A stretch of 55,607 nt of DNA from Phallusia mammillata (Eukaryota): positions 7,316,001 through 7,371,607 of the forward strand of contig OZ281497.1 of NCBI GenBank assembly GCA_965637545.1. Reading direction: 5' to 3'. Under the pieces are notes generated by a model. That model made no database searches, was not told where the DNA came from, and saw only the letters and a list, made by a program, of their open reading frames with translations. The position numbers and the translations under genes are program-made. Position 1 is the stretch's first letter; every line of letters begins with the position of its first letter. Positions 259-53,172 of this stretch are shown piece by piece.

Positions 259-1882
259 CTGTGAAGTGTTTGCTATTCTTAAATAGTCCAAATGACAGTC
301 GTAAATGCCTTCGATATCCATAGTGTATTGTATTGTGATAATCTGAAAACAAAATTAGTCATTCTCTTTCAAACGACTTCTATATCTCAGAAACGTACCT
401 GGTCAGGCCGTGCATTTATTATCCACCTGCAATCCTGGTTGTTGTCGTAATTCATTGGATAATTTGGTGAGTGAATGACACCGGAAGTGTTAGTGATCAC
501 GTAACCGCAGGTAAAAACTAAAAAAATGATTAATAGCAAAACATATGATCCTTGTAAAATGTAGGCTAACAAACCCGAACCTACCAGTAGCTGGCGTAAT
601 TGTGTAGTTCACAGGATCTAGAAAAATACCCAAAATTTAGTTCTCGTGTTGAGGGTAATTACAATTTTCATTGATTACACGGTTTAATTGGAACCAAGTT
701 TGACAAACAAACAAAAAAACAACAACAAAAAACAGACTAAGTAAGCAAATATAAACAGTTGATAAAAGTCGCACACCTCCAGCTTCATATCAACACATAA
801 AAAACATTTTATAAATACTTTCTCAAAATTATAAAAAACATTTCTCAAACGAAATACGAATAATCGAGAAAGCACTGTAATTACCATCTGAAGTTAAAAA
901 AGAAAAAACACTAATTTTTAATTTGGTGAAATGCTATAAATATCACATTTGTGTAAGCCCTCAATAGCAGAAGTGATTACTTACATGTTGCTACAAAAAA
1001 GCAAGTTTTCTTACCGACAGCATCCCAGTTGATAGTCACGTGACCTGGACTTGTGTATGTTCCTTCCCAGAAATAACTCAACACCACGTATATCATATTG
1101 GAATTCGACACGAACGACTTTGGTTTAGAATTTGAACACAGAGGTTGCTTGTACTGTAATACAACGCACAGCGTGTTTAAATTCCAGAAAGTTCTCATCT
1201 AAGGCACCCTAAATTCAGCGGACATCCGGATTTAAAGTTACTGCCGACTGACAAAAGTGTGTCAGGATGATGCATAAAGAGCAGGAGATACACTTCTGGT
1301 TGCATAGAAGCAACCTTTTTTTGCCATTTTTAGTCTTGCATTCAACAAAGAAACGAACTTAAAAACAGCCTATTATTATTTCCAATACACACACGATCGC
1401 ACAAAAGTGGTTGGCAATTACTATGTTTTGTTAAAGGTATTGCTAACAATAATTATGTTTTAAAGTTTCCCGCGTGACTAAGTCCATACCCAAGCGTTTC
1501 TTAATATTACACTGCATAAAAATTTACTTAAATAGTCGAGATTTTTTAAACAACACTAGTACCCGTATGAGTTCTATATTGTTTTTGTATTCTATTTCTT
1601 ACCACGTTTTGCCACCGAGAACCTTGGTAAACCTGAATGTATAGTCTGCTGCATTCCAGACTGGATGATAAATTGTATTCCAAAAAGCTAACGTTTAGAA
1701 CCTAGAAAACATAAAGATGCGACAAACTTTTTAATTTATGTGTTAAAATAGCGTAATTTAAACCTTTCCATATGATGCTTGAACTATCCAGGTACAGTAG
1801 GTACTTGGGTATTCATCTGTCGTAGTTCCAGGTATTGCCAAAGAGCCTTGGTTTTCGTAAAAAAAGTTGTCCGCCTTGCAAC
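259..1882 (-). CDS. CUB17 and partial CUB18 of the multi-CUB gene
   Basis: CUB17 exons 1764-1882, 1603-1701, 1015-1153; linker 585-617 ([11 protein letters not shown]); CUB18 exons 399-517 ([39 protein letters not shown]) and 259-342. The third CUB18 exon was not found in 1-258. Confidence 0.85.
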
Positions 1883-51141: not shown

Positions 51142-53172
51142 TCAACAAGTTAAGTATTCGTGCCGCAAAGCAATTTTTTCATTCCACGTAAGAGCTACTA
51201 CGCGTATTGCGATGGCCTCAACCGGTCCTTCAAACATGTTCAGAGCTTTGGTATTTTCGTCGTTGTTTCCCAAAAATTGCTGTTAAAATAAAAACAAATA
51301 AGCATTTATAACATTTTTTTTTAATCCAACATGCAGTTTTCAAGCCACCCTATACTGACTTATTGTTTTTTTGTTTATTTAAATGTTTATGGGGTCTAAT
51401 TTGCTAGTATGATTGATATTGGGTGAATAGTCTTGATGCTTTTTAATTAAACCCAACACATTTGTCGGTTCGCTAAAGGGAGCTTAAAAATGGTGACAGG
51501 TTCTCTGTAGCTTTATTTTAAGTGTGTATTAACGCAAGCCTATAGAATTGTGTTTTCATATATATTTAAAAAAAAAATTTAATTGTTTACCTTCTTCAAA
51601 ACACTCAACAGTTTTTACATTAGAAATCACTTACAAGATTTGAACTTGCATCACGTATGCCAATCCAACTTCCACCAATTTTGTTTAAGTACTTAACGTT
51701 GAATCGTTTTACCCACTGGCCTTTTGTATATCTTCCCTGAGTTATAATCCCGGTGATGGTAGTCAGCTCCTCCAAGGTTACTTCAATCCACTCTCCAACT
51801 TGACCTGTTAAAGTAAAAGTAATTTGACCTCATTCCAGAATCTAGATGACTTAAAACATCTCAGAAACATACTTCTAAATTAGGCGTCAAACTAACGCTT
51901 TCGGTTTATTGAATAATATTTTTGCCCAATTTGTCAAAATTTGACTTGAAACAAATTCAGATGAAACATTTGTGGACATCAAAATATATTAGTGACATAA
52001 CTTACCTTACATACTTTTTTATAAAGTCTTCAACGTTTATAACTTACTTGCGTTTATCTTTCAAAAATATACATAAAAACGTATGAAATATCGCTTTTTG
52101 TAAACTTTCTGGTTTTACTTCTGTTTTTGTAAAACTCCCGCATTTTGGATATTTACCATTACGCTTTTATTAATAAAAAAGGCTTAGTCGTTACTTATTT
52201 CTGGAACCCATGCGCCTTCCAAGTAATCCAGTCTTGCATGTTTTGGTTCAGTTGGAAGAATGTCAGAAAAAACACTTGATGCATTGAAATCACTATCCGG
52301 AATCAATCCCATCTGAAGTCCCAACTTGCACAACGAATCTTTCAGGAAACAGAAACATTTTGTTTTCTTTTTATGTCAAATTTAAATTGATCCTAGGTAA
52401 AATAGGCCACTGGTATAAAGCCTATTGGTTGCTGCTTTGTTGGTTTTTCATACACGAGCGTGTTTTTGTTAGTTTCTGGTAGTATTAGAGTCATTTTAAA
52501 ATACAGATTTGACGAGTCGTATAGTTTGTACGTTGCACATAAAAATACTTTTCATGGATTGTTAATTCTTAAGTATTCAGTAACGGGTTAAGAGACTCAA
52601 TGGCCAATGTTTGGCTCTCACTGACTCGGTTGTGCATTTATTAATTACCATTATTATTTCGTTTAAGTATTTTTTTAAATTTCAAAGCATGATAAATAAA
52701 ACAATGAATTGAATTGAAAATTGAATTATATTTTCATGAAATACACAATGGGCAAAAAACTTACCTCTATTAGCTGCAAGATTCACTTCCGAAAACTTTT
52801 TCAGCTGTTCTAAAATTCAAGCAAATTGTTTGCAGACATGACGGTTGTCAAGTATTTAGTAAAAAAGCTTGAAGAGAACATTGAAACCAATGCCCAAACA
52901 AGTTTTTTTAATATCAGCTACATTGTTCAAATTACCTTTCATCGTTTCAAGATGTTTGCAAGATTGAACGATTGGGCAACTTTCACTGCCTAAAAGCAAA
53001 TTTTCGTGCAAATAAATAATGTTTCGAAAACAATGTGTGAATCTATTTTTACAGCTGAAAATACAGTAGCAGTTGTTATCAAGTTATTACAAGTTTGCAA
53101 AAAATGATTTTACATGCCTGCTGATAAGGTAAGAACCGGAAAGACAAACAGCAAGGTCTTGAAAATGTACAT
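51142..53172 (-). CDS. Secreted single F5/8 type C (discoidin) domain protein C, 201 aa
   Basis: Exons 53118-53172 (MYIFKTLLFVFPVLTLSA; GC donor), 52936-52989, 52765-52809, 52195-52338 (SLCKLGLQMGLIPDSDFNASS...ARLD...AWVP), 51635-51804 (TITGIITQGR), 51142-51279 (IALRHEYLTC*). Confidence 0.9.

Follow-up and report, generated by a model that had tools for sequence, protein, structure and literature searches.

CUB-LDLa proteases, discoidins and a multi-CUB protein: a putative birth-and-death gene neighbourhood on one chromosome of the ascidian Phallusia mammillata

In matriptase (ST14) and enteropeptidase, a stem of CUB and LDLa domains precedes a trypsin-like domain; the zymogen is cut after an Arg that lies before IVGG, a linker cysteine can hold the stem, and Asp189 determines specificity for Arg/Lys. 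Prostasin (PRSS8) and testisin (PRSS21) carry a signal peptide together with a trypsin-like domain and, after small residues, a hydrophobic C-terminus of the glycosylphosphatidylinositol (GPI) type, with no CUB or LDLa stem. Another example is that of MASP, C1r and C1s (CUB-EGF-CUB-CCP-CCP-SP), which are CUB-bearing trypsin-like zymogens acting in recognition-triggered cascades with separate lectin subunits. Single F5/8C domains closed by a terminal Cys are known from retinoschisin (RS1), lactadherin C2 and the C domains of coagulation factors V and VIII (FV and FVIII), and long runs of CUB domains form an extracellular binding platform in cubilin and in EBR1, the egg bindin receptor of sea urchins. 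Here, a stretch of 55,607 nucleotides from the ascidian Phallusia mammillata is described (the window; C4:7316001-7371607, C4 being contig OZ281497.1 of a 240-Mb assembly), in which modules of these kinds are encoded by six neighbouring genes: a multi-CUB gene (CUB-W), two CUB-LDLa proteases (P1 and P2) and three discoidins (A, B, and C). On balance, the window is probably part of a lineage-specific birth-and-death neighbourhood of genes for secreted and surface proteins, which possibly share an adult expression domain.

The window has a G+C content of 34% and zero N, and its open reading frames (ORFs) are all short, which points to intron-rich eukaryotic DNA. Searches were run exon by exon, and spliced models were joined solely to check reading frames. 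The six genes are the following:

1 to 24318, minus strand: in-window part of CUB-W, with the exon of the signal peptide, 17 CUB domains in full and, of CUB 18, the front half.
30146 to 34326, plus strand: P1, 12 exons, 466 aa (Pfam exon by exon; spliced model); exons 30146-30230, 30526-30641, 30960-31049, 31274-31406, 31681-31791, 32134-32195, 32254-32414, 32672-32770, 32850-33001, 33254-33411, 33709-33862, 34247-34326.
36923 to 42728, plus strand: P2, 14 exons, 528 aa (Pfam; spliced model; one intron confirmed by RNA); exons 36923-37040, 37250-37371, 37645-37734, 37910-38042, 38477-38587, 38686-38747, 39019-39179, 39589-39690, 39975-40129, 40445-40608, 41190-41343, 41712-41750, 41996-42043, 42601-42728.
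43049 to 44536, minus strand: discoidin A, six exons, disabled (sequence reading, three-frame comparison, alignment with its copy A2, contigs of DNA run X2, and Pfam for exons 5 and 6).
46890 to 49728, minus strand: discoidin B, intact, 6 exons, 207 aa; exons 49728-49674, 49524-49471, 48832-48788, 48596-48435, 48077-47908, 47027-46890.
51142 to 53172, minus strand: discoidin C, intact, 6 exons, 201 aa; exons 53172-53114, 52985-52936, 52809-52765, 52338-52195, 51804-51635, 51279-51142.

An earlier, sequence-only reading had presented these genes as one cluster. Its domains, signal exons, orientations and expansions hold. In exon-by-exon Pfam scans, CUB, Ldl_recept_a, Trypsin and F5_F8_type_C agree with that reading in strand and location, and all six genes begin with a Met that leads into a hydrophobic exon of the signal type. 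CUB-W and P1 do stand head-to-head (ATGs at 24318 on the minus strand and 30146 on the plus strand, 5.8 kb apart), and P2 stands tail-to-tail with the discoidin array (P2 stop at 42728 and discoidin A stop at 43049, 320 bp apart). What fails is the notion of a self-contained unit, since the window cuts larger arrays and one of the discoidins is a pseudogene.

Genome-wide, about 48 LDLa exons of the CUB-LDLa protease type have been found, almost all of them at C4 4.80-8.97 Mb, with the trypsin exons in agreement; the CUB-LDLa-trypsin layout is present, at least in part, in 19 of 20 sampled paralogous protease loci. For the discoidins, with every candidate scored, 62 of the 66 matches to exon 5 lie at C4 4.79-9.82 Mb, and the family comprises at least 60 genes. 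Lineage-specific, locally expanded families had been proposed from the window, and both families conform to this at the scale of C4 4.8-9.8 Mb; of a duplication-prone region that covers about 5 Mb of one chromosome, the window samples an arbitrary 55 kb. Within this region, the nearest discoidin is no more than 40 kb away in six of the seven protease arrays (gaps of 7, 36, 10, 435, 20, 2, and 12 kb), and when positions were permuted at random within 4.7-9.9 Mb about 4 in 10,000 trials reached six of seven (p about 4e-4). The linkage between proteases and discoidins on C4 is non-random.

This linkage favours an alternative in which the genes form a true functional module, the GPI-tethered proteases, the soluble discoidins and the multi-CUB protein being co-expressed and interacting on one cell surface. 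In such a module, the discoidins would serve either as substrates or as subunits of a recognition or opsonin-like kind, the CUB protein would be a docking platform, and selection would keep the genes close; mucosal or blood-cell immunity and gamete or egg-coat interaction are conceivable settings. In its support, all the products are predicted to be extracellular or surface-bound, and the families turn over fast, as is frequent in recognition systems. Moreover, the discoidin and protease trees are not congruent array by array, and therefore a single inherited ancestral block is no obvious explanation for the repeated juxtaposition. The same map, however, speaks against such a module. The largest protease array (5.96-6.36 Mb), which holds the closest kin of P1 and P2 (6.04-6.09 Mb), has no discoidin within 435 kb, and in the trees the window discoidins fall beside genes at 9.76-9.81 Mb, with no CUB-LDLa protease found within about 700 kb of these. 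In total, five discoidin arrays, that at 9.7-9.8 Mb included, are without a CUB-LDLa protease nearby. Close relatives of the CUB domains of CUB-W are confined to a local array at 7.27-7.34 Mb, so that the trio of protease, discoidin and CUB gene is no recurring unit, and one of the three window discoidins is dead. The linkage is thus repeated across paralogous arrays but is lost in the closest paralogs of the window genes themselves, and a functional module is considered possible but unlikely.

Turnover is visible in and around the window itself, where two features record recent duplication:

41354 to 53716, unstranded: segmental duplication unit formed by the P2 3' end and the discoidin triplet (self-blastn of the extended region).
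54891 to 55607, plus strand: copy of a fragment of the P2 3' region, matching 41354-42079, the start of the duplicated unit, with 79% identity.

The unit at 41354-53716 recurs 19.5 kb to the right, at window coordinates 54891-73352 and mostly outside the window, with 79-96% identity. In this copy, A2 has lost the donor of exon 4, B2 contains stop codons and C2 is intact. The junction between P2 and discoidin A was considered as a genome-wide repeated unit and ruled out, as a DNA search of the own genome finds it elsewhere only in this one local copy. On the left side, the 3' 15 kb of CUB-W have a tandem copy 24.35 kb leftward (84-96% identity), and a third related gene lies farther left. Two recent segmental duplications have therefore taken place, one of 24.35 kb (CUB genes) and one of 19.5 kb (P2 3' end and three discoidins), and just outside the window there are a degenerate third protease, two more multi-CUB genes and the duplicated discoidin triplet. 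Genes have also died after duplication, namely discoidins A, A2 and B2, the degenerate protease on the left and the protease fragment.

These block duplications, together with the frequent pseudogenes, are also what would be expected of an incidental neighbourhood, in which an ancestral protease and discoidin pair spread by block and tandem duplication, the trees being later blurred by rearrangement and gene conversion, with neither regulation nor function in common. Consistent with it, most of the protease arrays contain both protease subfamilies, which suggests that multi-gene blocks were copied. On the other hand, the discoidin and protease trees fail to mirror each other, with supports that are modest to weak because the alignments are short. 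In addition, purifying selection on the CUB exons and on intact paralogs indicates that the genes themselves are functional. The selection scan that the sequence-only reading had proposed gave a ratio of non-synonymous to synonymous substitution rates (dN/dS) of 0.26 over 670 aligned codons between CUB-W and its left tandem copy, which places the CUB exons under purifying selection. For discoidins C and C2, five non-synonymous and no synonymous changes were counted, while the introns differ by about 2%; this pattern is suggestive of relaxed or positive selection, with counts too few for significance (P about 0.29). An incidental neighbourhood is regarded as improbable.

The favoured birth-and-death neighbourhood would work as follows. 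Three families of secreted or surface-tethered proteins would evolve by birth and death on one ascidian chromosome, a C-terminal GPI-like signal would tether the proteases to the membrane, and the interleaving of proteases and discoidins would most likely be due to chromatin or regulatory surroundings that both share in some cell type that is adult and not embryonic. Several points weigh against it. The shared expression domain is deduced from gene position alone, and the recurrent adjacency could instead reflect functional coupling or an inherited block structure. The protease arrays were defined from searches in which only the best candidates were scored, so that array positions are lower bounds. 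GPI anchoring of P1 and P2 is a prediction from hydrophobic tails that lie in predicted last exons, and the apparent intactness of CUB-W, a gene of approximately 65 exons, is deduced from open half-domain exons and from the dN/dS value.

The two proteases share one layout: a signal peptide, a CUB domain encoded by three exons, an LDLa domain, a QCGK linker, the DPR/IVGG site, a trypsin domain and a hydrophobic C-terminal tail, with two short Ser/Thr-rich exons ahead of the tail in P2 as an addition relative to P1. Both models have GT-AG introns only and no internal stop, exons 3-7 and 11 are equal in length between them, and the proteins are identical at 231 positions of a 532-column alignment. 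Matches to Pfam CUB and Ldl_recept_a exceed the curated cut-offs, and this stem is N-terminal to the protease domain. The Trypsin model (PF00089) is covered collinearly in P1 (positions 1-46, 42-83, 80-130, 133-176, and 178-220), and in P2 at 1-46, 80-129, 133-177, and 174-220 (exon 8 being left out of the scan). In the spliced translations of both proteases, the catalytic triad His57/Asp102/Ser195 is complete (AAHC, DIA(L/I), and GDSGGP), Asp189 is found within D(S/T)C(L/Q)GDSGGP and the activation site reads DPRIVGG.

From these residues, P1 and P2 would be active trypsin-type S1A proteases, made as zymogens and cut after the Arg of DPR/IVGG, with Asp189 predicting Arg/Lys specificity; the pro-piece would probably stay attached via the cysteine of QCGK, and one CUB and one LDLa would make up the recognition stem. 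In all these respects they resemble matriptase and enteropeptidase, from which they differ in a cleavable-type signal peptide, in the lack of SEA, MAM and SRCR domains, in having one CUB and one LDLa, and in a putative C-terminal tether. Compared with MASP, C1r and C1s, with which they share a CUB-bearing trypsin-like zymogen, P1 and P2 lack EGF and CCP domains and possess an LDLa and a membrane tail. A type II transmembrane N-terminus was considered for P1 and P2 and discarded, as they start in a signal-peptide-like manner instead of with a cytoplasmic tail and a signal anchor: by inspection, the hydrophobic stretch begins at residues 3-5 and is followed by a cleavage-type motif of small residues. 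No SEA match came up when both proteases were scanned with Pfam over their N-terminal exons.

Like prostasin and testisin, both proteases would end in a hydrophobic GPI-type C-terminus preceded by small residues. Signals of this type consist of small omega-site residues, a brief polar spacer and 12-20 hydrophobic residues at the end. The mean Kyte-Doolittle value of the last 15 residues is 2.27 in P1 and 1.85 in P2, in tails encoded by predicted last exons, with Gly, Ser or Ala ahead of each; in P2 the terminal hydrophobic stretch is preceded by Ala-Ser-Gly-Ser-Ser. The last exon of P1 and exons 12-14 of P2 are predicted splice models, the best candidate for the former (34247-34326) having a good acceptor and a predicted tail similar to that of P2. 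No Ser/Thr stalk was found for P1, either by DNA similarity to the P2 tail or in a composition scan for a Ser/Thr/Pro-rich exon. The description of both genes as GPI-anchored CUB-LDLa proteases is therefore sound with respect to the CUB-LDLa-trypsin layout, which is intact, and GPI attachment is a prediction from the tails modelled on both. One splice junction of P2 has been verified directly: a contig of RNA run X4 joins 39690 to 39975 exactly, which confirms the intron 39691-39974, and this joint is absent from DNA run X2.

Dozens of copies, reading as active proteases of trypsin-like specificity, might also suggest digestive or bulk secretory enzymes, that is, gut or brush-border proteases comparable to enteropeptidase or membrane trypsins and expanded for diet, with unrelated lectin neighbours. 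The near-absence of the proteases from RNA-like sequencing runs would fit expression in an adult organ if these runs are assumed to be embryonic. Nothing links the genes to the gut, however, and a CUB-LDLa stem with a membrane tail is found more typically in surface proteases with a regulatory role than in enzymes of bulk digestion, so that this explanation seems very improbable. The fertilisation proteases of ascidians bear on the functional module on one cell surface. HrProacrosin and HrOvochymase, which are trypsin-like, CUB-bearing proteases of sperm and follicle cells, take part in egg-coat interactions, and to that extent they support it; nevertheless, the ascidian fertilisation proteases described so far differ in domain order from P1 and P2, as their protease domain or domains precede the CUB domains, and both an LDLa and a C-terminal membrane tail are missing (PMC9265791).

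Three further observations concern the proteases. A third CUB-LDLa-trypsin gene lies on the minus strand about 6.8-10 kb left of the window (L003:1-3800), between two multi-CUB genes, its closest kin being at 7.25-7.26 Mb; its LDLa is intact, its activation motif is degenerate (RITGDN) and no GDSGG exon was found in L003:1-3800; probably the gene is either a pseudogene or codes for a dead protease. In exon 13 of P2, at 42007-42012, an A>G change and a deletion of 1 nt occur in one DNA contig of about half depth; they represent either cross-mapping from the copy at 54891-55607 or a second haplotype that would lose the frame and with it the GPI-like tail. Finally, a very high-copy repeat occupies intron 7 of P2 (39223-39510) and 44199-44233, with a DNA word depth of about 28,000 versus about 300 in the flanks; pieces of it occur in contigs of all three RNA-like runs that were compared, which indicates transcription of this repeat family from some part of the genome.

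The discoidin genes follow a plan of six exons, which encode a signal peptide, then a short segment with two Cys and a linker, and finally, in the last three, one F5/8C domain that opens with C-K-L-G and ends in the Cys of L-T-C. Exon 5 scores 35.4 bits in A and 37.3 bits in C against PF00754 (cut-off 28.2); taken singly, exon 6 of these two genes and both exons 5 and 6 of B also match, with scores under the cut-off. Of the three secreted discoidins proposed, B and C are intact and A is a pseudogene. Exon 4 of A (43720-43569) measures 152 nt versus 159 nt in A2, its frame being shifted because of a 7-bp deletion at 43646/43647, and the donor of exon 2 is GC. The possibility of an assembly error was dismissed, as the X2 DNA contigs over 43446-43680 read the same sequence.

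Discoidins B and C resemble RS1, lactadherin C2 and the C domains of FV and FVIII in that a terminal Cys closes their single F5/8C domain, to which a signal peptide and a short Cys segment are added. They differ from RS1 in having two Cys in the N-terminal segment (versus four in the RS1 domain) and from lactadherin in the absence of EGF. Exon 4 of discoidin B is 64% identical to P0001, a lactadherin-like protein of Phallusia mammillata whose best match in this genome lies at C4 9.81 Mb (80-85% identity). A protein word search with exon 4 of discoidin B, and then with P0001, matched P0001 itself and an otter factor VIII isoform only. Solved relatives of P0001 include the C domains of FV and FVIII, lactadherin C2, retinoschisin and neuropilin b1, with E values of 1e-22 to 1e-24 for the C domains of FV, FVIII and lactadherin; invertebrates commonly possess small lactadherin-like proteins with a single domain. 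By analogy, the window discoidins would be small soluble proteins of 200-207 aa that bind lipid or glycan ligands.

CUB-W had been taken to end at position 259. This is not the case, as the left flank shows the gene running 5.2 kb past the edge of the window. That part (about 5.2 kb, locus L003) completes CUB 18 with its back half and adds CUBs 19-22, followed by a Ser/Thr-rich stalk and, at the C-terminus, a hydrophobic stretch. The whole gene comprises a signal-peptide exon followed by CUB half-domain exons, found in order by a local CUB hidden Markov model (HMM), giving 22 CUB domains across about 29.6 kb. Three of its parts are placed as follows:

24228 to 24318, minus strand: CUB-W exon 1, signal peptide, ATG at 24318 (ORF listing, ATG check, and best canonical donor/acceptor pair 24228/23817).
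12303 to 12614, minus strand: CUB domain 9 of CUB-W, in a single ORF (local HMM positions 1-94; Pfam CUB positions 1-84).
2993 to 15885, minus strand: old internal duplication of CUB-W, of 5-6 CUB domains (self-blastn).

Against Pfam CUB (PF00431), exons for the N-terminal halves score 31-40 bits, above the cut-off of 21.4. The divergent units at 23684, 7925 and 14184 are unrecognised by Pfam as single exons; the first two are placed by the local HMM (7925 weakly) and 14184 by position only. In CUB domain 9, the N-terminal and middle exons are fused into one exon by intron loss. The internal CUB repeats that had been noticed are real, as 2993-9077 matches 11308-15885 in five collinear pieces with 67-75% DNA identity and offsets of 6.8-8.3 kb. 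The tail exon is 55% Ser+Thr, and the last 18 residues are hydrophobic (mean Kyte-Doolittle 1.53) with Gly, Ser or Ala before them. Judging from these features, CUB-W is probably a mucin-stalked 22-CUB protein with a GPI-like tail that would serve as a cell-surface binding platform. In this it resembles cubilin, with 27 CUBs, and EBR1, although it has no EGF or TSP1 repeats, carries the Ser/Thr-rich stalk and hydrophobic tail and has its kin in the local array only. Multi-CUB genes of another type, with the CUBs in long intron-free ORFs of 655-677 aa, are found at C4:5057442-5076521, on either side of a single CUB-LDLa protease (5.06 Mb); with a discoidin 36 kb off, this is the sole other place with all three domain families.

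With respect to expression and regulation, two DNA sequencing runs contain the window, and almost none of it is present in 12 RNA-like runs. Three of the RNA-like runs were compared with window positions 38400-44399 (6 kb), across which one spliced P2 fragment (X4) and repeat-derived pieces were recovered, and no discoidin A transcript was found. Over 400 bp of sequence upstream of each of the six ATGs, no 8- to 10-mer common to the three families was detected beyond shuffled controls, in what is a weak test; the lack of a cross-family promoter motif is a further argument against the functional module. The sequence-only reading had envisaged a co-regulated, lineage-specific surface cascade. 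The genes are lineage-specific and linked, and their products look surface-bound, with signal peptides and GPI-like tails in CUB-W, P1 and P2, but co-regulation and a cascade find no backing in the upstream words or in the closest paralogs, which are unlinked. The region between the two head-to-head genes can be described as follows:

24319 to 30145, unstranded: CUB-W/P1 spacer, 5.8 kb, with repeat remnants (self-alignment; ORFs without a Pfam family).

This spacer is no compact bidirectional promoter. It contains no recognisable gene, and the ORFs at 22977-29966 and 35955-36287 match no meaningful Pfam family. Its remnants at 28591-29225 and 29684-29902 recur about 40 kb to the left with 80% identity, in the same relative place beside the neighbouring CUB gene.

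Other repeats occupy the right side of the region. A tandem repeat with a unit of about 490 bp that bears a tRNA-Leu(AAG) gene (54363-54446) is present in about two units at 54012-54890, and also as an array of at least 6 kb at window coordinates 79301-85607 (L002, L006), about 25 kb to the right, with 89-97% identity. To the right of the window there is also a 2.46-kb inverted repeat with 99% identity (73753-76200 and 76729-79187), placed around a 200-N assembly gap, which may have arisen in assembly or may be a true palindrome.

A full-text literature search found no account of the layout of P1 and P2, nor of a discoidin expansion in ascidians. It is conceivable, if rather unlikely, that the discoidins and surface proteases cooperate in an undescribed, fast-evolving recognition and proteolysis system to which the multi-CUB protein would be a local accessory; its candidate roles would be allorecognition, gamete interaction, or immunity of the mucosal or blood-cell type.

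Ascidians are the closest invertebrate relatives of vertebrates and, without adaptive immunity, nevertheless display allorecognition and self-sterility. Big families of surface proteases and lectin-like proteins with fast turnover are natural candidates for such recognition tasks, and the predicted layout of P1 and P2 unites features that vertebrates divide between matriptase-type and prostasin-type enzymes. The useful result is the map itself, that is, about 48 proteases and at least 60 discoidins non-randomly interleaved on one chromosome arm. If the families are not co-expressed, this would be an ordinary case of tandem expansion of secreted-protein genes; in either case, the map turns a vague idea of a cluster into one that is testable with adult-tissue or single-cell expression data.

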